A DNA stretch of 64,000 nucleotides from Guillardia theta CCMP2712 (GCF_000315625.1 NW_005434665.1:136969-200968), one strand, 5' to 3'; shown: positions 3,041-22,440, numbered from the stretch's first letter. Notes: generated by a model from the letters alone, not told the origin. Numbers and translations: made by a program.

Positions 3041-3231
3041 TTGGTTCTCCTCCTCCTAACTCCTTCCACCATTAGCTCGCACTCCCCTCCCCCCTTTCCC
3101 AAGACCTCCTTCCCTTCTGTTAACACACTGTAGTGAAGTTACTTGTGCTCTATTTCTCTCTGTCACCCAAATAATCTAGTCGCGTGTCTACTCCGTTCCT
3201 CCTCCTCTATCTCCAGCTCTTCTTCCTCTCG

Positions 3232-5237: not shown

Positions 5238-5963
5238 TGACATCTTGTTCGTACAACTCGCTTTCACAGCGGGTAGTGTGGGAGAGGAGTTTATGTAGCG
5301 CTGATACACCAAGATGTAAAAGCAAACAGGAAGTTCAGTCAAAGAGACCCTTGATGAAGGGGTGAATCACTGTTGATGAGAGATTTGAAGCGAATAGATC
5401 ACTTTCATGAAACCCTTCATTGAAAACATCTCTTGTTCTTGCTTTTCACTCGCTTTCCAGGGAGTACTTGAGCGATCAGATCTGGGTCGAACAGCAGGGA
5501 ACATCTCAGGGTACGTGCACTTGCTCGCCGCCATGCTGTCTACCGGCGTTTCTGACGGCGTGAGAGCAGGTGGACCATTATATTCCTCTCCTGTATCTAC
5601 TTCATCGCCGGTGTGATCTGCTCCCTTCGCTACTACAAGCATGCGAGGAGGAAGCGCAACGAGTGGCTCAAGGTCGTCTCCATGGAGGGACTTCGTGCGC
5701 AGTCGATGCTGGAACTGCAGGCAGCCAAGGCGAACGTGGGGATCCTTGTGGTTACAATAGTTATTACGCTCCTGTACACCCTTATCGGAGCCCTTGTGGG
5801 GTTTGCCGTGGGGATTACGATCGGGGTATTGATAGGGCAGATCTTCTTAGTGGTCCGCCTTCCCTTGACAGAGGAGTATGAGATGTTGACAGGGGCGCTT
5901 ATCACGATCATGCTCCTGTTCTTCTCACTCGCTCCTTCCTCCATCAATCTCTACTTCCTGTGA
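5238..5963 (+). CDS. Small multi-pass membrane protein of unknown function (spliced)
   Basis: The last exon encodes several hydrophobic segments (VGILVVTIVITLLYTLIGALVGFAVGITIGVLIG; LTGALITIMLLFFSL). Short GT-AG introns lie upstream; the start is approximate. Confidence 0.55.
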
Positions 5964-6540
5964 TCCCTTGCACGCAATGCTATGTGCGGAATGTTGTGAA
6001 GGTAGACAGATTTGGAATGATTTCAACCAGAAGATTGCATGTTGATATTGTAGATGTAGATGTACACGTAGATGTATTTGACGTGATGTACATGTTGTTG
6101 TAAAGTAATCGAGTCCACATTTTCGTTTCACAGATGTTCTAGTGTAAGTTTTCTGTCGTCAAAATCTGCTGGGAGTTGCATGGTTCACTGTCACTGGCTT
6201 TGCAAGGTTCTGCGGGTCTTGTTCGCCGAGTCCAGTCCCGCTGTGGATGCCTCCTGGTTTCGTCGAGTCTCTCACCACCTGAACCCTTGACGACCTCGCT
6301 CGCTCGCACAAGATGCAACTAGTTTCCACCCACAGCAGTCATACAGGAGTTGGAGGTGTTGGAGGAGGTGAAGATGCAGGAGGTGGGGGAGGAGGAGGAG
6401 GTAAAGGATCAATGGATGGAGCCGAGTCGAGGGAGAAGGGGACGGGATGGGGCCAGGAAAGGGAAGAGTACTGAGGACGACAGGAGGTCTCACCCGCACA
6501 TCATGATGTAGGACAACGAGAGGTTGCTATACCATCCCCC

Positions 6541-8993
6541 ATGGCTAGTTCCTCCTATGCTTGCATCCCACTGATTGAGAAACTGTTGGAAGAATTTCGA
6601 CAGCCAGAACAAGAACATCTCAGCAACGTGGCAAAACTTCTCATCTTTCTACCTGACCGAGGACGCCTAGAGAGATTTCTCCGCCTTGTCGCCCTCCATG
6701 GGCAAAGTGAGCCTGGAAGAGCAGAAAGAGACAGTCATCGGAGGTTGAGGGGAAGGAGGGATACCTGGAATGCAATCATGAGGAGAGAGGTGTGAATTCG
6801 AGCTCCTGGCCTCTTTGCCAGACAGTTGTTTGCAAACCTGCGCAGGTCGAGATGAGCGGTGACGGAATCTTGTGGAGCTGACATGGAGATGTGGTGGAGA
6901 GATGGTATGAGAAAGTGGTTGTAGCGTTGAGAGACTGTTGATAGAAAGATGGGATCAGCAGAGATGCAAGAGGTGAGAAGCGAAACGAACATGATAGCGA
7001 GATGAGATGAGATGAGATGAGATGAGATGAGATGAGATGAGATGAGATGAGATGAGATGAGATGAGATGAGATGAGATGAGATGAGATGAGATGAGATGA
7101 GATGAGATGAGATGAGATGAGATGAGATGAGATGAGATGAGATGAGATGAGATGAGATGAAAAGGCAACAGGATTTGAGCGCTCCTCAACATACACTCTT
7201 TGTACTCTTCTCTTACCACAAGAAATCACTCCAGCTGGCTTCCTTGGCTGCGAGTTTCTGATTTCGCTGCTCCTCACTCATCCGATTTCGAGGTATTTTC
7301 TTGTTCTTCTGGAAATCTTCTTGATCTTTCTCCTCGCACTGACGACATGCATAAGTATCTGCATCTCCGATATCAACTTCCTACTGCCTCGTTCCCTGCA
7401 CAGGAGCCTTGGTCACTCAACGAGTTAGAATTCCTCTTCTTGGAGATGTTGATCTGCATGGCAATCAGTAAAACTTCCTGCCTTCCATCGTCGTCGACTA
7501 CATTTCCTACCTGCTTTTCTTGCTTCGACTGGTAAGTCTTGCAAATCATCCTTGTATCATTGCCTGGCAAACATATGACAAGGGAGCAAACCGTGGTATT
7601 CATCGCACATGCATTCAAAGCGTTGACAATCCGCAAGTCGCTCACTTCTTGATACATTTCTTGCACCCTTTTGAAACTGTCGGGATCACCAGGTCGAATC
7701 TGCGGTCCCTTGTCAAACTGACGCATCGGATCGGTGAAGCAGCGGGCAGGACCTTGAGCCGGATCTCTTTGACAGCCTGCCGGCACCCTCGGGCAAAGGT
7801 CGCAGCGTCCCTTGCTGCCTCAGCTAGCGCGTATTCTCGGAGGTTCGCGATGATAAACCAACAAAACAGAATGACGTAACCAGACCCAGAATCGCTCCCC
7901 TTGCATTTAGGAATCAGATAGATCAAGATCCTGACTAATGCACCACCTTTTCATTCTTGATTGCTGCCAGAATCACCTGTCGTTTCGAGCATAAAAGCTT
8001 TACAATTTCCATTTTTGACTTGCAGTGTGAAGACAATTCATCGGGTTGGATGAACGGCAGATCTACAAGAACGTTGTGAATCTGAAAAGATCGTGAGTTG
8101 TATGCTTGATGCAGAAGGCTCCCTACAAGTCGTTCACTTCTTTCTGGAAGAACATCCGTCTTTTCCTCCTTCACACGGTTGTAAGTCCCAGCAAGGAAGG
8201 ATTAGTGGCATCTACGGGTTTCATTCCAGGAGATGGGTCTTGAATCGTATCGATAAAACACTCACAAATTTCTTGCCAGTCGGACTCTGAGATGTTTGGA
8301 GCATTGCTCGCAATGGTGTCTTGCAGAACATCTGCTGCTCTCCATGTTGCATGCTCTGCATTGATTTCTTGAAAATTGAACGAATCAGCACAACCAAGCC
8401 TGTTCCAAGACACTGTCAACCTGCTGAATACTCCTTCTCGGTGAAGACAGGTTTCGTTGTTCCATGGATGCATACAGGAGCAAGGAGCTCGTCCTCTGCT
8501 TTTACAGATATCCTCTTCGACAGCTCGCCCACACTCTTGTGTTGTTCGCATCTCCGCAACGACTCTCCTCCCTTCAGGTTGCTATAACACTGCATCACAA
8601 CTAAACTGCAATGCGATAGGAAAGCACCTCGCATACTGTCGGATTCTATCAGACAGATCCATCATGGTACAGGCGAAATGAGAGCGAAATGCTGCCGCCT
8701 TCGCTTCTGGATTTGCAGCTTCATGTCATTCCATGGCAATGCGAAAGGCGAAACCTACTCGCTTCATGTCCTTCGTCTGATAGAATTTCTTGAGGGTTCA
8801 TGGAGTCCCTCAAGAAGAGAACGGCTACGATCAACACATGAGCATGCTCAAGTCTCTCTCTCAACATCGCCGCTCCTTCTCGATGGCGGAGGACAGTCTG
8901 CTCAAGGCAGGTATTTCAGCTCATAGGATGCATGTTACTGACTATCACCGAGTGTTGGAGAAGGAACTCTCTGGCCCAGTCGTCACTCGCTAG
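6541..8993 (+). CDS. Hypothetical multi-exon protein (one or more genes)
   Basis: A chain of + strand ORF segments is separated by ~50-nt GT..AG introns. No recognisable domain; boundaries approximate. Confidence 0.35.
6999..7160. repeat. (GAGAT)n pentanucleotide microsatellite
   Basis: Perfect gagat tandem array of about 32 units. Confidence 0.97.
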
Positions 8994-12782: not shown

Positions 12783-15759
12783 GAGGGGGGAGTGCCCTTG
12801 CCAAAAGCTACAGTTTCCTCAGTTCATACTCAAGCGCTGCACTTTGGCACGGCCAACCGGGGCATTGTCCCGTGCATGTAGTAAAGAAAGCCCTGCAGTT
12901 AACCCCTAAAGGTTCATAGAAGGCTCCAGACGATTCGATTGGCGAAACGAGGCATGAAAGTGGCATGATGCTGACAGATTTGGATGCGCCTCGCACCTCA
13001 TCGCAGCAGAAAGCGTTAGGATGAGGTCCATGAGGTGGGAGAGCGGGGTGGTGACTTCTAGTAAAAGGAGGGGTCCCCCGCACTCCGAGTACTCCCCAGC
13101 CATGGAGATGCGCTCCGGTTATTGAAACATGATAGACTCTTGAATGGAGCCTGCACGGCTGTGGCTTGCACAGCAGCGGCATCATGATCTGGTGATCGGC
13201 GACCGGATCTCGTGTAGTAAACTGGAATGACTCATCCGGTGTCCGAGTCAGTACGGTCACTCAGTGGAGAGTCGGATCCGATGAAGATGATCAGCAGCGG
13301 CCACTGCCGGCCGACCGGGTGACGGACCCGGTGTCGGCCGGCCAGGCCCTGTGCGGCCCGTACCTTGAACTTTCCAAGAGTCAACTCGCCGCGGGACGGT
13401 GACTGCTGCTTTACTCAAAGTTAAGTGCAGCCTGTCACAAGTTCAACGGCCCGGCGGGCCGGCCGGGCGGCGGCCCGGACCGTGGCCGAGTCACACCGTC
13501 CTGAGTACGGGCCGGGCCGGTCCGATGGCAGACTCCGAACTGGCCGAGTCCGCGGGGCGCCCCACGGTGCCAGGGCACCCGGGACGGTCACTGCACGGCC
13601 ACTGGACCGGCCGCGATCTGCCCGGTGGCATGTGTTGTCGGTCGAGGCATCCGATGCAATCCACGGGGGCCGTGCCTTGCTCGGCCAACAGTGTCACCAA
13701 GTAATTTACTACAGGAATTTCCCAAAGGATGAGTCCTTTATAGGGTCCCAAGTACATCCCTATTTGAAACGATGTATCTCCAGACTAGCTTTACTCCTAT
13801 GAAGAAAACTCCAGAAGGATAACATGAGGTAATCATCCATGACGAAGTCGTGTAGTAGCCATGCAGGGACTGGGGCCCGTGCAAAGGCTGACAACCTCCC
13901 TCAGGTCCCGTGCCATGCTGAACCTGTCTGTGTACCTCCTATTCCGCCCCCTCTCCTACTGCCTCCCTTCCTCTACCTCTTCCCTCCACTCGGCCATTCG
14001 CCCCCATTACATCCAAGAAAGACACATTTACTCCATGTGTGCCATATTGTCTTGCTGCACTACATCCCTCTGACTCCCTCTGCCTCCTCTTGCTCTCTGC
14101 CTCTCTCTGTGCGTTTGCCTTTCCCTCCCCAGACCCAAAACTTTGCCACCGAACTTTCGCTTCCTTCCTTCTGACCCTCTGCCTTCCCACCCCCCCGGGC
14201 CTTCCTCTCCCATGATCGGCAGCTACAATTATGCTGCATTTTTCCTTTAAATTCACTAGTATGAAAATACCTTCAAAGCAATGATGGAAATGCTGTCGAT
14301 CAAACAGCTCACCTTTCATCTGGTCATGACAGGATGAACTTGGAGCTTAGCTCAATAAGAACTTGCGCTGGAATTTCTCTACTAAGAGGAACGCAGTGTG
14401 ACAAAAGGACGTCTATCTTTCTTTATTCTCACACAACCAACAAAACAAGCCAACACGCACTGGTGTAGCACAAACAGACGTGGCACACACACGAAAGGGG
14501 AAGATGACCATCGAGTTCTGACGAGGATGATCCTTTTCTACCTTCCAAGAAGGAGGCAGGAGTACCGTCTCTTGGCTGAGGGAAGCAGGAGTTGTGATCT
14601 CTCCTTGGAAGTTGACAAGCTTCCCTCCTCAGATGTTGAACATCCCTTCAGCTCTTCGTCCTTTTCAGCAGACTCACACTGGAGTAGAGTATCCTCAGGG
14701 CCTTAGTAATCCAGGAGAAGGCAGTTTCGAACACGAATGCGAGACAGCCAACTATCCTTTCCTTTCGCAGTATCATGAGTATTTTTTTACGCAAAGTTAA
14801 GTGAGTATCATCCGATTCTCGGACTCAGACTTTGAGTAAACGGACAGACAGTGACTCAGGCTTTTACTCAAAGTTAAGTCAGGCTACTCCGACTCTCGCT
14901 GTCTTTCAAGTTCTCTGATCTCAGTTTAACTTAAACTTGACTGCGACGGTGAGTAAAGAAGAGTCAACGGCGGCCGTCGGACGGTCCGATCACACAATGA
15001 CCGGCGACGGTCACCGTCTGAGTACGGTCCGATCATACGACTAGCGGCCGGAACTCGTCGGAAGCCTGGGCGGCGGGGAGCCTTCGGCGGAGCGGCTGGG
15101 GCTGCCACCGGTGACCTCGGACGGTGGCCGCCGGGGAACTCAGCGCGGCGGCTCAGTGAGACGGTGCCAGACTCAGAGTACCGTTGACCGTGAGTCGGAC
15201 TCCGATATCGGACCGTCGCGCCGCCCTACACCGGTGACACGGGCCGCCCCCGCCGGCGCCCGGGCCCGGCACCCGGGTGCCGTGATTTCAACTTAGTTTC
15301 GCGGCCGCGGCCGCCTGCCAGTCGGACTCCCGTACTCAGTACGGTGGCCCGCAGTGGCGGAGTCCGACTCGGCCCGGGCTCGGCCGGGCCGGGGGGCTCG
15401 GCCGGGCCGGGGGGCCCGGCCGGGCGGGGCCCCCGCCCGGCGGCCGGCCATACCGGGCAGTTTCCCACCGCTCCCGGCACCTCATTAGTAGTTCATCAAT
15501 TGGGGTACCTTCTTTGATGGGGGTGGGCTGCCTGGTTTGAATTTTTGTACCAGAAATGATTTTTGAGTAATTACATAAAAGTTGTTTTTGAGAGATTTTA
15601 GGATGTATATATGGTACAAAAGCTCCTGGCAACCCCTCTGAATGACCCGGATCCTGAGCACCCCTGTCGAAGCGGATGGCTTTTTGTGATAGCGTCGGGA
15701 GTGCATCCCCCCCTCAGCTCTGCAAGCATAAGCTGTCCTACTATTCGGGATAACGCTTC

Positions 15760-17031
15760 ATGAAGCTCTTCACCTTCTCGACGAGGTCTGGCGGCTTCCT
15801 AGTCCCAACCATCCCCCGCCCCTCCAACCAATCCCCCGTCCCTCCAACCATCCCCCGCCCCTCCAACATGCGTTCTCCCCGCATTTCAAGAGTTGCCGCC
15901 CAAGAAGGGAGGGAGAAAATCAGAAGGGTAACGCTAGTGATGGATGATGACGGGGAAACTCGGAAGCTTGAGAGAGATTGTGTACCTCAAATGATCAAAA
16001 TCCCTTTTTTCTTCTCTCGGATGTTATTTCAGGAAGACACTGACGCTCCTCAACTTGTGCTTTGTGGTAGTAGAGAATCGCAAAAGCGCGAATTTCTAAA
16101 ACCAAGTATGGGAATCTCGTTCTTGGACGTCAACAAACAACTCCGGCATGGTATGATACGAAAAGTAACCGAGAGTCATGTAGATGTTTACATTCTTTAC
16201 ACCAAGGATGTATTGAGACAAGTACAAACCAATGTCTTGAGTGGAGCTCGCTTGACGCAATTCATCTCTAGCCTTGATGATCATGAGTGCTTGCAGAGCA
16301 TCTACACGGACCAAGTTCCATTGCAAGACATTCAGGAAACTGTATTGCTGAACTATGCCCAATTCTCTGTAAGGACTATGCGGTGCAATAGCTTACTGAT
16401 CGTTGGGTGGTTGTACTTCGGAATGCCAGGACGCAAAAGTCAAGAATGTCAATTTTCTTACTTCAATACCATGACGGTTTTACCCCAGCAACTGAAAAAC
16501 TTTGTCGATGTCACTCTTCTGCTTCAACTTACAAATACCATTGAACTTCACTGGGAATTGGAATCGATCAGACGCAGTTTGAACAAGTGGCTGCAGCTGA
16601 GAGGAAAACCAAAGACTCGTTGTCTTGCTGCAGCAAAAGAAGCTCCCTTGAGATTCAATGTGGAGATACAGGATATGCGTGCAATGCTGTTCCTTTTTTC
16701 TGAGATTATGCAAACCGATCCCAATCTTGAAGCAGAGGCAATTAAGTGTTCCACTGTTAGCAAAAGTAGCCTGGTAACATGCTATTGGGTAATTCCTGAG
16801 ACATATCTAAGAACCTCTGTTTTGCAAAAGCACTTGACTATACCCTTTCATGATTCACAACTACGGTTGCCAAATGGGACTGGTAGTATTTACGTGGAGG
16901 GGCCTGTGACAATCAGCTTACGAAGACAGAAAACTGCTAATGAGGCTGGGTTGCTCATTTTCAGATTTTCTAAGATCTATCGTTACGGCTGGACTGGAAA
17001 AGAAATGTGGAGGTTTCCTCCTCTCAAATAG
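15760..17031 (+). CDS. Transposon partner protein (423 aa; alternative start ATG 15868) with a BAH-like segment
   Basis: Long uninterrupted ORF ending 90 bp from the transposase stop. The GMIRKV..HVDVYILYTKD...HECLQSIYTDQVPLQDIQETV segment resembles a BAH domain. Confidence 0.7.
   Translation: MKLFTFSTRSGGFLVPTIPRPSNQSPVPPTIPRPSNMRSPRISRVAAQEGREKIRRVTLVMDDDGETRKLERDCVPQMIKIPFFFSRMLFQEDTDAPQLVLCGSRESQKREFLKPSMGISFLDVNKQLRHGMIRKVTESHVDVYILYTKDVLRQVQTNVLSGARLTQFISSLDDHECLQSIYTDQVPLQDIQETVLLNYAQFSVRTMRCNSLLIVGWLYFGMPGRKSQECQFSYFNTMTVLPQQLKNFVDVTLLLQLTNTIELHWELESIRRSLNKWLQLRGKPKTRCLAAAKEAPLRFNVEIQDMRAMLFLFSEIMQTDPNLEAEAIKCSTVSKSSLVTCYWVIPETYLRTSVLQKHLTIPFHDSQLRLPNGTGSIYVEGPVTISLRRQKTANEAGLLIFRFSKIYRYGWTGKEMWRFPPLK
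15805..15867. repeat. Tandem 19-20 bp repeat CCAACC(A)ATCCCCCGCCCCT, ~3.3 copies
   Basis: Units at 15805-15823, 15824-15843 and 15844-15862, plus a partial copy ending just before ATG 15868. Confidence 0.9.
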
Positions 17032-17121
17032 TTTGTTTATAGCGGCCGGCTTACCAAGTCCATTTCAAGAGTCGTGGCAAGCTCATCCGCGCCAAAGATA
17101 GCACAGAAATAAAATTTTCAT

Positions 17122-19638
17122 TTATGTACTATTCAAAACCACTTGTAATTGTTTTGCTTTGCGTTCTAAATTGAACCAACTTACCATGCTCAGCGATGCT
17201 AAGGCGTAGTAAGACCAGGCTGCTTGGCGCGACTCCATCAAAGGTTCATGTTCTCCTTCACGGCGACGTTTCTTTGAGACGAATGCATTCACCTCTGGTT
17301 GGACTTGAAGATATGAAGGTCTTCCAAAATGTCTGTGGCGATTCTCGACGTTACTAATGTTCAGTAATCCAAGAGGGATCCCATATTGTACCAAACGGTC
17401 GTAGAATTGTTGGCCAATGTGCCCAACAAGGAGCGAGTGGAAGTAGAATGACTGCATCAAAGTAGGATCTCCAACCAGATCGATAATGTTGAGCATGAGA
17501 TTTCTCAATCTTACTGGAACGGTCAAACCGATTTCAAAATTCAGGTTTTCAATTTTTTCAATTTCTTGACACTTCAGCATGCTGCTTAGCAAGTCCCATT
17601 CTTGCATTACTTGAGTCCATTGTTCTCTGTCATCTGCATAGGCAGGATCGCTGTAAAGGGTATTGATAACCACTGCGGCATTTTTGACGAATCGGGCACA
17701 TTGTTCCCCGTTCAATTTTCTATTATGAGACTTCTCAGTGAATTGCACATTCACTCCTTGCTCTTGTAATCGAAGGTTGACTGTCGCGACCTTTCTCATC
17801 TGCGCCGCTTTCTCTTGGAGGCAACCAATAATCATGTTCGTCGTTCTTATGAAAGCATGAAACGAGCAACAAGCTGCTTCGCCGCTGCATCTGTCCATTT
17901 CAATGAGACGAATCACTGGGATCTTTGTTCCAATTTCCATGATCAATTCTGGGTCTTGCAGATAATTTTGCAGTCGAGTCTGATTTTCTTCAGCTAATAA
18001 CTCTTGGAATTCTCCTTCCGAGGTATCGAACATTCGTTGGAAAGCATCGGGACTTTTCAACATTCTGTTTAATTTCTTGATGCCCTCGGTAGACATGACT
18101 AGTCTTTCACACACTTGGGACAGAGTTTCGTCGCAAACGATTGTTTCGATTTCGAAATATTTGCCAGCCTTGTGATCTTTTAGGAGTTCGTTACAGTGGA
18201 GACAGAACTTACCCTCATTGTCGGACATTCCACCAATGCCGTACATATTCCATTGCCCTTGCAAATCAGATCTCTTGACGAACTCCACTTGGATAATCTT
18301 GTCAGGCTTACCACCTGCTAAAGTCTTTTGAAGTCCCCCGACTGCTTGATTGTTGTAGACGTGAATACCTTTCTCCTTCAAGAGATCAATAACTTGATCA
18401 TATGCAGCTCTCACAGTCCTCTGAAAAACCTCAGGACTGTCTCCATATGGAATGTAGGACATCGTCATAAGGCATGATGAACTTCGGACAAGCTTTTGCC
18501 AGAATTTCCATTCTTTCTTCGAACAGTCTACGCCGTAAGGGAAAATGGAAATGGTGACTTCAGTTGCCTTCTGAGGATTGCCAGCCGAGAAAGTCATTGT
18601 TGCACAGTCATAGTTGATCGTGATAACAAGGCGATGCTTCCCGTGAAGTTTGAAGATATCAATCCACTCTTCGACAAGTTGAAGGAGGCCGAGACAATGT
18701 GTCCCATCTGGCAAACAGAACAGTTTGAATCTTTCGCACATCGCATGCTTCTCTTGTACTCTAACCCGTGATATTTTTGGCATTGGAATAAAGCAGCCAG
18801 CCATGCTATCGTTTGCACGACAGAATCCTTGGTACTGCGATTTCGTTATACCGTTTGCTGTCAGGGCAACTGCTGCCTCTCGCGCGCTCGGCATCATTTG
18901 CCTGACCGCAGGTTTCAGGCAGTTTTGAAGCTCCTTATTCGTGGCAAGTTCATTTTTTATGACTGTCTTGAAGGCTTGACTGCTCAGAATGCCTTCAAAG
19001 AACGTAAGGCTATCGTATTTCGAAGTTTTGCACTTCTTCTGCTTTCGAGGCCCCTCGGCCGCTTCCTGTCCAGAGTCATCCTCACACTGGTGGTGAAATA
19101 GATCAGCAAAATGTCCCCATTTCACTCGACAATTGGCCTTGTGTGACGCAAAGTGCCGATCTACCTTCTTCGTGACCACATCTAGAAGGTCCTCATCAGT
19201 GTCACCCTGGATCTTCTTCAGAATCGCTGTTTTCACTTTTGGATCTTTGATAGAATCGTAACAAGCCGGAATTGGTTCATCAGAGTCGGAAATAATCCCT
19301 TCGCGTATGGCTTCATCCACATGATGACTAAAACCTCTCTGCTCCTCATACTCTTGTAAGATTCGAAGCAACAACTCAGGAGATCTACCTGCATCTCAGG
19401 TGTTACAAAGATTTGAATTATACAAATAATCTCTTTTCAAACCTATGGCCTTCAGGCAAGCATTGACATTAGGTTGTCCTTGCCATTTTCCTTGTTTATA
19501 GAGGAAGCCCGCTCGACTTGCCAGAGACTCCCAGGTGAGCAATTCATCGTCTTCCAGGGTGATCGTTTGTTTGCGACGTCTGCACGAACTTCCTTGCAAA
19601 GGTGGGGATGACGGATTTGATAGATTTGGTCCTGACAT
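17122..19638 (-). CDS. RAG1/Transib-like DDE transposase, ~820 aa, two exons (19638-19443 and 19388-17122)
   Basis: A 54-nt GT-AG intron (19389-19442) joins the 80-aa and 750-aa ORFs in frame (..KAIG|RSPELLLR..). Ordered motifs INYD, RSDL, FCLHC, SFHAF, KLNGEQ, YFH-x5-H and SNVEN parallel RAG1 D600, D708, C727/C730, H795, NG, YFH..H and E962. Confidence 0.8.
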
Positions 19639-22440
19639 GGTTAATCAATGTTTTAATGTTCAAAATGCCAGGCCAAATTTCAAGATCCCACTGACATGTC
19701 TCTCAACTTGTGCCGTGGCGACTGGCCTGTGGAAAAAATTCAAATCCCTGAAATAGGGATGGGTGGGGAACAGGGGGGACTACCCTACCCCCTATTTGTG
19801 AAAGCACTAGCAGAAAAGGACCCGGTGACTTCATTCTTGTACTAAACCCAGAAACACAGTACACAATGAATTTGAATCAGGCACAAAATATTTTCGAACC
19901 TTAGTATTGAATTTCTAAGTCTTTTCTACTGTGTTTCCAATTTATATTTATTTTATGATTATCCGTATCCTTCTAAAACGTTTTCGCAGCCTTAAAACAT
20001 GTCGTCTGTTAAAAGTTTCGAGGGGAGTGGGGTGGTCTTGAAGGTTACCGCCCATGACAATTCAAATACCCCACCCCCTATTACTAGATGATAATGGGGG
20101 TAAAAGGGTGCTTCTGTGCGAGGGTAAGTACCCGTATATGAGCAGTCAAAAGTACCGGTCATTGAAAGCGCTAATCAGTAATCCTGGAATTTCATATACC
20201 GGTGCAGCCCCCTGAATCCCAATATGGCGGCGGCGCCGGGTCCGTCAGTGGCAGCCTCAGACCGTGAGCGGCCCTTTCGGAACTTCGGAACTTCGGAACT
20301 TCGGTCGGAGAGTCAAAGTTCCGGTCCCGGACTGACCACTGAGGAGTCCGACGCCGGTCCGGCGGGCCGCGGCCGGGCTGGGCCCGGCGCCGCCGCCGCA
20401 GTGCCGCCTCGCCGACTCCGGGCGGCCGGCCGGGCATGTATACTGACTCTGTGAGACTATTTGAAGCGGCGGTGGCCCGGGCGTGACCCTTCCCAAAGTG
20501 ACAGAATTTCCCATCGTATCAGAGAGGGGTGGGGGTCTTGAATTTCTACTTGAATGTGACATGGGATTGAGAGAGTCCTCTATACCTATGATCTCAATTG
20601 GGAATACCTCTACCATATCGTAGGGGCATGCAGAAGAATGGTCTTGTTGAAGAATTAGAGGGTAGGGGGTGGGTGATTGACAGCAGTGCGAAGGGGCGGA
20701 ACCAGGGAGTAGGGGTCAGCTGTGTTTGCCAGTTCCACCGAGCCTTTGCGGGCGGGTAGGGTGGTATGGAAATAGTAATTAGAAGGGGTACAGGCAACAT
20801 TTGAGGGTAGATGCCATCAATAAAGAGGGTAGGGTACTCTGTGTTGACAGGGGTGTAGAAATTTCAGGAATGTTTTAGAATTGGTGTCGACTAGAGTTGA
20901 GCTCTTCGATTTCAAATTTCTCATAAGATGATTTCAAAGATAAACAGGATGTTATCCAAATTTATCCCAAATGGGTGGGGGTATGATGATGCAGGCAACG
21001 GAGGCGATAGGACATTGCAGATCGGCAATGCTGTAGGCTCCTTTCGCATCTGCTCGACGAAGAAAGAGACATAGGGAAGATGGAAAAGATGAATGAACAA
21101 TAGACGTCGAAGTGAACTCCGAGTGTTGAAACCTGAATGCTGAGCAATGTAGTCTGACGCATGGGTAATACATCCGGGGGGCAAATTGAAATCATTCCAA
21201 CTTCCATGAAATAGGCGGATAGTGAAACAGAGAATCCTACATCTATGTATTTCACAGTAGAACAAAGAGTAGTATGCATTTGTAGAATGTAGAGAGAGGC
21301 CATGAAATTAACCTGATGTGGAAGTGGAAGAGAAGAGGTAACTAAACCAACCAGAATCGGTCGTGAGAGATTTTCGTCGTGGTTGCGAGATCAGGAGAGA
21401 ATAGTTGGGCAGTGAACTTCAACTGCTTATGCTTTGAATACCACAGGAACAAACATTTGAAGCAAGTGAAGAGGTTGAATTTAGTAAATAGCCATCCCCT
21501 GCAGGTGTGGTCGTCTAGTACGGTTGTGAGGTTTTAGAGCATTGATTTGAATTCGCCAAGATGCTGTTTTCAACTCGATTGAACGTAATTGTGCAGGTCA
21601 TGAGAACAAAACTCGAAGGTATTCCAGAACCGCCAAGTGGGTATGTGCCTCCCCTTGGCGCTTCGCACAGAACGTGGACCAACATCTACAAGAACAAGGG
21701 AAGGATTGACTACTGCGTATCTCAATTCTCTGTGAGTGAACGTCTTTGTGCTTCTTGCATTGTTAGTGACAGGATTGACAGTACCTCACTAACCGCTTGA
21801 AGTGCGTGGCAAAGGTATGTTTCTCTTGTTTGCAATAACCAATCAATTCGTCCTAACGACGTCTTCGCAGCTCACCGGCGGTCCGTTCTTGGACTAGAAG
21901 ATCGTATTGAGAACGAAAAACATGGTATGTGTACCCGTCAGGCGGTAAAATACGAATACATATCCCAACCAGTGGGAGTTACGGTTTCGAAATGCAAACT
22001 AGTCATGGATACGTAAATGCATACTTGAGGTCATTTTCTTCACACATGTTGATTCATACTCTGCATAGTGCATAAGATTGCAGAATATTCGGAACATGTT
22101 GACTCTTGCTATGCCAACCATACAACTCTAACCCGGGGATCCCTTGTCTCCTTGAAATCGATGAATTCATGAGGAAGGGACTTGACACACATGCGTGTCC
22201 AGAGAGTAGCCAGGAACCAGCATTCCGAATTCAACTTCTTTCATGCATGATCGGTACTTCGATGCAGCACAAGATGTCGTGATTTCCAGTTTATTGGATA
22301 CAAATAGCAAACAGGAAAGGCGTAAGGCCCTTTACAGGCTCGACCAACACTGTCAGTGTTAGACAAGAACATCCTTTTGTACAAAGACAACAAGGATCGG
22401 TGCTAGTCGTGTCTGTGCATGACGACTAGTCATGACTCAC

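Follow-up and report, generated by a model that had tools for sequence, protein, structure and literature searches.

A probable two-gene DNA transposon in Guillardia theta with a RAG1-like transposase model and a BAH-like partner

Is the compositionally odd block that splits a GC-rich island on a Guillardia theta CCMP2712 scaffold (GCF_000315625.1, NW_005434665.1) a mobile element, and are its two convergent genes a RAG1-type transposase and a partner other than RAG2, as the first-pass annotation of this DNA had proposed? The window analysed here is the whole stretch of 64,000 nucleotides (136969-200968 of the scaffold). All window positions are counted from its first letter, and searches covered the 87.1-Mb genome assembly in 669 contigs. 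We conclude that the block (15449..20226, 4778 bp, without assigned strand) is probably an autonomous two-gene DNA transposon of the cut-and-paste kind, from a family not annotated before, encoding a transposase (from open reading frame 2, ORF2) and a cooperating partner with a BAH fold (from ORF1).

Boundaries, copies and transcription of the element

The block has a low guanine-plus-cytosine (GC) content of 0.42-0.48 within 15449-20226, against 0.74 (15000-15499) and 0.60 (20000-20749) outside, which bears out the distinct segment of ~4.8 kb described previously. It contains two long ORFs only, and these converge with their stops 90 bp apart (17032-17121), again as described. BLASTN comparisons with other loci of the genome show that homology begins at 15449 and ceases at 20226, with unrelated flanks in four contigs (C242, C80, C65 and C560). 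The ends proposed earlier, 15449 and 20226, are thus the true ends of the element, and copies with common sharp ends in unrelated flanks establish that it is mobile. The copies found in C242, C211, C560 and C80 are 98-100% identical to the window element; the one in C211 is a further full-length copy and the one in C242 reaches 99.98% identity. Six-frame searches of the genome returned 67 matches to ORF2 and 70 to ORF1, and besides many diverged families of the element, the genome contains derivatives shortened by deletion and degenerate fragments interrupted by stop codons. The internally deleted derivatives include a 1.9-kb copy in C80 that keeps both ends.

Such near-identity between copies could alternatively betray a pair of host genes that was duplicated, or an artefact of the assembly. 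The scaffold carrying the 99.98%-identical C242 copy has runs of N, and the search for an empty site that had been recommended was negative, which would suit this alternative: each 300-bp flank of the window copy occurs only once in the genome, and no empty site was located with them. The uniqueness of these flanks in itself speaks for mobility. However, ends that are sharp and common to several genomic contigs and to metagenome contigs despite unrelated flanks, the wealth of diverged families, of deleted derivatives and of decayed fragments with stops, and a composition foreign to the flanks leave this alternative scarcely credible. Other kinds of element were considered too. A Helitron, a Crypton or a retroelement is ruled out, as neither ORF carries a Rep/helicase, tyrosine recombinase or reverse-transcriptase signal, and so is a virus-derived island, since the block holds two genes only and no capsid gene.

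The gene model of ORF2 needed a correction, which RNA confirms. Its open frame on the minus strand (17122-19374) encodes 750 residues, which provide the ORF2 numbering used here unless stated, and has no ATG in its first ~160 residues. Upstream and in the same frame, an ATG-initiated ORF of 80 codons (19638-19396) ends in TGA. A 54-nucleotide GT..AG intron (19389..19442, minus strand) holds this in-frame TGA, and its joint (CT..AC on the plus strand, cut +2) is present in 3 raw RNA reads of X19 and in RNA contigs at a depth of 480 (X2) and 339 (X6). Because this intron is spliced out in RNA, the TGA is removed and ORF2 encodes a protein of 820 residues from a coding sequence of 2,463 nucleotides with one terminal stop. 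Exon 1 (19443..19638, minus strand, ATG at 19638-19636) contributes an N-terminal motif common to the paralogs, and exon 2 with the stop codon (17122..19388, minus strand) encodes the body of the putative transposase. The long ORF of the first-pass annotation and its stop at 17122 therefore stand, while its start moves to 19638 by way of the intron.

RNA coverage reaches over both ORF1 and ORF2. The RNA contigs of X2 and X6 also contain two joints that correspond to genomic deletions, 16774>18343 (as in the C75 copy) and 17682>19412 (as in the C560 copy). Since these deletion joints appear in RNA, the existence of non-autonomous copies is probable and their transcription possible. For another joint, 17194>18542 in window coordinates, no matching genomic copy was traced. 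Taken with the near-identical dispersed copies, the deletion derivatives and the intact genes, this spliced transcription is a sign that the element has been active recently.

A RAG1-type fold in the ORF2 model

ORF2 and its paralogs have no significant Pfam match, and a word-based homolog search with ORF2 returned near-identical entries only. RAG1-domain clusters were indicated by a feature search with a language model, and an exhaustive hidden Markov model search with a profile of the paralogs yielded 176 cluster representatives, among them proteins of 900-1800 residues that come from metagenomes and from Cymbomonas, a green alga. The AlphaFold2 model of ORF2, calculated with an alignment of 39 of these 176 representatives, has a predicted local distance difference test score (pLDDT) of 86.6 and a predicted template-modelling score (pTM) of 0.81. 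When this model was compared with the PDB by Foldseek, all 49 matches at E<=1e-3 were RAG1, amphioxus BbRAGL or HzTransib; the best one is 4wwx_E (3e-10), and the next fold, the P element, follows at 2.8e-3. The Foldseek-independent search VIA gives the same group, with Z scores of 18.9 for RAG1 (6dbi_C), 18.1 for BbRAGL and 12.5 for HzTransib, ahead of the P element (11.0), ISCth4 (8.6) and Hermes (8.2). In VIA, 428 residues are aligned between the model (159-742) and RAG1 (477-1023). The structural neighbours in the Atlas are, in order, unannotated eukaryotic clusters, arthropod Transib-like proteins and vertebrate RAG1. The RAG1-like core so delimited is encoded at 17149..18900 on the minus strand. 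At the level of fold, it agrees with the arrangement of RAG1/Transib-type transposases, in which preR-RNH, a ZnC2/ZnH2 insertion and a helical C-terminal domain accompany the DDE core. The structure check recommended for the large ORF thus came out in favour of a RAG1-type DDE protein with an RNase H fold.

Four acidic residues of this core are candidates for the active site: D256 (codon 18607-18609), D312 (18439-18441), D370 (18265-18267) and E677 (17344-17346), all on the minus strand and checked by position. They are found in every aligned sequence of the 39 relatives, whose identity to ORF2 ranges from 14 to 45%. The model places D256 in beta1 of the RNase H sheet, D312 after beta3, D370 just after beta4 and E677 in a late helix. 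Two pairs of candidate zinc ligands, also encoded on the minus strand, are conserved in the same alignment: C391xxC394 and H646/H652 are kept in all relatives aligned there or in all but one. Besides, each of C503, H506, R510 and H680 is missing from two of the aligned sequences at most. The two close histidines are spaced as H646x5H652 in the window copy and as H(4)H in 27/39 relatives. The resulting order (acid, acid, acid, C(2)C, His, two close His, Glu) parallels the active-site list of BbRAG1L (D701, E764, D811, H894 and E1063) and its ZnC2 and ZnH2 modules (PMC7204232). By motif order and secondary structure, D256, D312, D370 and E677 would be the equivalents of D600, E662, D708 and E962 of RAG1, and C391/C394 together with H646/H652 may form a zinc site. 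ORF2 would accordingly belong to the DDE transposases whose RNase H fold is interrupted by a zinc-binding insertion domain, the architecture of RAG1, Transib and Chapaev.

A feature that sets the model apart from RAG1, RAGL and Transib is an insert of ~100 residues within the insertion domain (17872..18192, minus strand, residues ~395-501), located between C(2)C and C503/H506. Its likeness to LysM comes from VIA (Z 4.7-4.9 to LysM proteins for model residues 394-501), from the ORF2 profile against the LysM repeats of LytE (E 0.024), from the Pfam LysM profile in the relative P0097 (E 8.7e-4) and from a Cymbomonas homolog named 'LysM domain-containing' by its source. The insert is a beta-alpha-alpha-beta module that is kept in distant relatives, in which N436 is nearly invariant. 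Taken together, these signals argue weakly to moderately for a LysM-like insert. LysM is normally an extracellular glycan-binding module, whereas ORF2 would be a nuclear enzyme. Of the N-terminal RING or zinc-finger domains of RAG1, none was detected by Pfam in ORF2.

The partner gene and its linkage to ORF2

ORF1 lies on the plus strand at 15868..17031 and encodes 387 residues from M37; the frame opened by the ATG at 15760 has 423 residues and gives the numbering used here. An alignment of 15 paralogs indicates M37 (15868) as the probable start. Sequence searches outside the family (Pfam, PDB and profiles) gave no match for ORF1, and a word-based search with the ORF1 profile retrieved near-identical entries only. 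The AlphaFold2 model based on these 15 paralogs (pLDDT 73.6, pTM 0.73) starts with a basic N-terminus that is disordered except for one helix, continues with a beta-rich part (93-237) and closes with an alpha/beta C-terminal domain. The beta-rich part (16036..16470, plus strand) resembles BAH domains by Foldseek, VIA and the Atlas. Indeed, Foldseek matched it to the BAH domains of Sir3, Orc1, PBRM1, AIPP3, EBS/SHL and DNMT1 (3e-5 to 1e-3). In VIA, 18 BAH entries scored Z 8.4-11.6 and a nineteenth (DNMT1 BAH1) 7.0, the best non-BAH entry reaching 5.2. BAH clusters of the Atlas gave a template-modelling score (TM) of 0.68 by target. The superposition with the BAH readers covers ~120 residues at a root-mean-square deviation of ~3 A. 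In sequence, however, ORF1 is only 7-13% identical to these readers, it has other surrounding domains, and it is encoded by a transposon. In the model, residues 93-237 thus adopt a BAH fold, which is a chromatin-interaction module.

The first-pass annotation had stated that the partner is not a kelch propeller of the RAG2 type, and this holds, with a BAH-like fold in its place. Since no propeller is found among the best 50 VIA entries for ORF1 (all Z >= 4.0), ORF1 is not RAG2-like, RAG2 being a six-bladed kelch propeller. Elsewhere in the genome, frames of 300-411 residues resemble ORF1 in its N-terminal and BAH part at ~20% identity (E 1e-4 to 1e-6), among others at C2:38332, C4:961970, C28:676486, C12:578886, C113:93122 and C75:295599. 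No ORF2-family match occurs near them, and they may encode BAH proteins of the host or serve as the partner gene in a different family of elements.

The linkage of both genes, another point on which the annotation had asked for evidence, is well preserved. The convergent ORF1-ORF2 pair, a few hundred bp apart, is found in ~20 loci at identities ranging from 100% down to ~20%. Almost every ORF1 match at E<1e-10 is accompanied by one to ORF2, the few exceptions being fragments. For 12 paired copies, the identity matrices of ORF1 and ORF2 are correlated with a Pearson r of 0.98, a value reached by 0/5000 Mantel permutations, so the two genes have diverged together inside the same elements. Moreover, both are under purifying selection. 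When two copies of another subfamily that share 94% identity (C154/C285) are compared, the ratio of nonsynonymous (Ka) to synonymous (Ks) divergence comes to 0.19 in ORF1 and 0.35 in ORF2; in deeper pairs Ks is saturated, with Ka of 0.3-0.5. That the element recruited its partner independently, as had been proposed, is a reasonable inference.

Members of the family are also found outside this genome. In the metagenome sample ERZ930071 (ENA), the convergent pair is complete on two contigs: L054, which shares ~95% identity with the C47 copy but has different flanks, and L052, which represents a distinct lineage. A JGI metagenome contig (3300014720, L053) shares 94.6% identity with the window element. 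As these family members are 94-95% identical and sit at other sites, a close relative of Guillardia theta is present in those samples. Further away, the locus L046 encodes an ORF2 homolog (profile match at E 5e-26) with a convergent downstream ORF of 535 residues, which matches the BAH region of the ORF1 profile by hhalign (94% probability, E 1e-7). At L048, a marginal ORF1 match stands beside a distant ORF2 relative. The partnership of ORF1 and ORF2 is hence old, but not demonstrably universal in the wider family.

Termini, affiliation and a possible mechanism

The ends of the element form a short imperfect terminal inverted repeat (TIR). The left arm is CATACCGGG (15449..15457, plus strand), with the same first base in C242 and C80 despite different flanks. 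The right arm, read inward, is CATATTGGG (20218..20226, minus strand); it equals the left arm at 7/9 positions and ends on the same base in C80, C65, C560 and C242, where flanks differ too. In the lineage of C47, the termini are CATAYCGGTC and CATATTGGTC, and every confidently read terminus of the other subfamilies starts with CAT. No longer TIR or internal repeat was found beyond these termini of ~9 bp.

Around the window copy, the GC-rich DNA at 15300-15448 and 20227-20400 contains 18-bp tandem units (GGGCTCGGCCGGGCCGGG), an 8-bp repeat (TTCGGAAC) and GC-rich inverted repeats, so that the element interrupts a structured GC island. A GC content of at least 0.62 is seen in 10/21 flanks versus 9% of background 100-bp windows, which suggests an insertion preference for GC islands.

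Several other copies have peculiar neighbourhoods. A 169-bp second left end (CATAGCG...) is located immediately ahead of the element at L027 (2635-2803). At L029, two 27-bp direct repeats, 170 bp apart, adjoin the left end (255-451), and from ~5384 onwards another left end, of diverged sequence, adjoins the right end and has CATG in common with it. Next to the C17 copy of the same locus, a minus-strand open frame of 882 residues (5354-7999) with a weak zf-RVT match (E 0.004) is probably part of a neighbouring retroelement. Finally, the same GC-rich sequence of ~27 bp (TAAGTGTCCGGAGATTGGCCGGGGGCC) abuts two elements of different subfamilies in opposite orientation (L028 4127-4155 and L032 6814-6843), and may be another repeat or a preferred target.

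A number of results weigh against a RAG1-type cut-and-paste transposon that works with a BAH partner. With respect to the ends, the comparison with Transib and RAGL elements failed: the element has a TIR of ~9 bp and CAT..ATG ends instead of heptamer-like CAC..GTG ends, and a target site duplication (TSD) of 5 bp, as in RAGL/ProtoRAG, is lacking. More generally, TSDs of 2-9 bp are absent at 5/5 complete insertions (window, C80, C47, L054 and C17), the nearest to a TSD being CCGGC versus GCGGC at the window copy (4/5 positions). The absence of a TSD is unusual for a DDE cut-and-paste element. The C56 copy (subfamily B, L030) lacks the last ~38 bp of its right end and is flanked on both sides by a perfect 34-bp direct duplication (3049-3082 and 8020-8053) that is otherwise unique in the genome, a structure that is not as expected from standard cut-and-paste insertion. 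Moreover, the flanks behind the GC enrichment are non-independent and the background is rich in transposable elements.

As regards the proteins, ORF2 searched against PDB sequences, as single sequences or as profiles, matches no RAG1 and no PDB chain. The Pfam RAG1 profile (PF12940) finds nothing at E<=1 in the 39 relatives and nothing at E<=10 genome-wide, in searches whose control genomes, like those used for PF06918, hold no positives. The proposed equivalence with RAG1 residues rests on motif order and secondary structure rather than on superposition. For ORF1, none of the 15 paralogs matches the Pfam BAH profile and no histone-binding residues were identified in its BAH domain. A complex prediction for ORF2 159-750 with ORF1 75-423, made with alignments unused and the partner fold uncertain, scored 0.00, which is evidence neither way. 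No ORF1 homolog is recognisable beside the distant ORF2 relatives L045, L047 and L049-L051.

Where does the element belong, given these data? The claim that it encodes a RAG1/Transib-type transposase stands as to fold, by Foldseek and VIA, and does not as to sequence membership, termini and TSD. Like RAGL/ProtoRAG and RAG1-RAG2, it has two convergent genes within one transposon, and it shares with RAGL/ProtoRAG the RAG1 core fold over ~430 residues and the series of ordered conserved acids, C(2)C and two histidines ahead of the last Glu (PMC7204232); its sequence has no detectable similarity to RAG1. With Transib, it has in common a RAG1-type DDE fold (Foldseek 2e-8 and TM 0.58 by target for HzTransib 6pqx_A; the VIA score above being for 6pqn_A) and the eukaryotic cut-and-paste habit that we assign to it. 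Transib, however, has one gene only, its termini are CAC and its TSD has 5 bp (PMC7204232), unlike the two genes, CAT termini and missing TSD of the present one, and no sequence match links both.

The nearest named sequence family is Chapaev. DUF1280 has been equated with Chapaev transposases and clusters with RAG1 (PMC3985635), and it is the sole recurrent Pfam family in the 39 relatives (8/39, all below the curated cut-off, best E 0.0032). It also marks 16% of the members of the top Atlas structural neighbour of ORF2. Furthermore, the wider family shows in its consensus the Chapaev hallmarks C(2)C, LH and H(4)H (PMC4079192); the window copy keeps C(2)C, with FH in place of LH and H(5)H in place of H(4)H. 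The element could therefore be a divergent Chapaev (CMC) member and not a relative of Transib/RAGL; its layout would then parallel that of CACTA-type two-protein elements, and its RAG1 likeness would only reflect that no structures of the wider clade other than RAG1 and Transib have been solved. We give this alternative a substantial chance, yet somewhat short of even. Against it, every DUF1280 match of the relatives is sub-threshold and the DUF1280 profile (PF06918) finds nothing in this genome, while the CAC..GTG termini and the 3-4 bp TSD of Chapaev (PMC4079192) are not those observed here. In the descriptions consulted, Chapaev consists of a transposase gene only, with no mention of a convergent BAH-like gene or of a LysM-like insert. 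The two labels are not exclusive, since Kapitonov and Koonin placed Chapaev as a clade inside the Transib superfamily (PMC4411706). As the motif series is present, the DUF1280 signal is sub-threshold and the hallmark ends and TSD are missing, we place ORF2 as a deep unannotated lineage of the RAG1/Transib/Chapaev structural superfamily, perhaps nearest to Chapaev. We found no literature linking Transib or Chapaev to Guillardia theta, to BAH or to LysM, in a search in which Repbase was not covered.

How could the two proteins work? The catalytic transposase would be ORF2, with D256, D312, D370 and E677 as candidate residues, and it would recognise the short CAT..ATG termini together with subterminal sequence and integrate without detectable TSD. 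ORF1 (~390 residues) would be an element-encoded accessory protein combining a basic N-terminal helix, the BAH domain and the C-terminal alpha/beta domain, and could work with ORF2 as RAG2 does with RAG1, or as the Myb-like protein does with the Harbinger transposase. By reading chromatin, its BAH domain might recruit or license cleavage and integration, which may explain why many copies lie in GC-rich islands. By analogy, the most economical mechanism is probably that ORF1 cooperates with the transposase and links it to chromatin as the PHD finger of RAG2 does, a possible functional parallel between two chromatin-reader-type folds. Accessory proteins needed for targeting or end binding are known from PIF/Harbinger (transposase plus Myb-like protein) and CACTA (TnpD plus TnpA). 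Those accessories are DNA binders and not BAH-fold proteins, both groups make 3-bp TSDs, and in fold and family their transposases are either distant from ORF2 or unrelated to it.

Alternatively, ORF1 could stand outside the transposition machinery, either as a selfish accessory that acts on host chromatin (e.g., by countering silencing or altering local chromatin) or as a DNA-end binder like TnpA of CACTA, with ORF2 alone being sufficient. This would suit the chromatin-interaction nature of the BAH fold, the lack of a predicted interface (in itself evidence neither way) and the lack of a recognisable ORF1 neighbour beside most of the distant ORF2 relatives. HzTransib, according to PDB entry titles, acts as a single protein, and epigenetic accessory genes such as TET/JBP occur in other DNA transposon lineages (PMC12730594). 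Nevertheless, the strict co-divergence at similar rates (r 0.98) and a tight convergent layout kept down to ~20% identity and in L046 fit functional coupling, though they do not prove physical association, and we consider a role of ORF1 outside transposition rather unlikely.

Cooperation between ORF1 and ORF2 in a transposon remains our preferred explanation. Its boldest version would be a heteromeric RAG-like transposase that evolved independently, in which a RAG1-fold subunit recruited an obligate tail-to-tail BAH reader in place of the kelch/PHD protein RAG2, and in which this reader directs TSD-less integration to particular chromatin, the GC islands. It would amount to a second, convergent origin of the chromatin-gated two-subunit architecture on which V(D)J recombination is built, and one of sufficient age to be shared with distant metagenomic relatives. 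We put it forward tentatively, as a possibility clearly weaker than the general proposal of a two-gene transposon.

To conclude, our results bear on the origins of RAG and on transposon mechanisms. A central step in RAG evolution is the gain of a second subunit by a single-gene Transib-type transposase, and here, in a protist lineage remote from the animals, the same catalytic fold and the same convergent layout appear to be combined with a wholly different partner of chromatin-reader fold. Should the two proteins cooperate, they would offer a natural comparison for why RAG1-type enzymes recruit partners, for how chromatin reading gates cleavage, and for how target-site geometry changes within one fold, no TSD being made here. 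Besides, this work provides a structural annotation for at least 176 database protein clusters from algae and metagenomes that had no Pfam annotation. As the element looks recently active from its near-identical copies, intact genes and spliced transcription, it is a candidate new transposition system.

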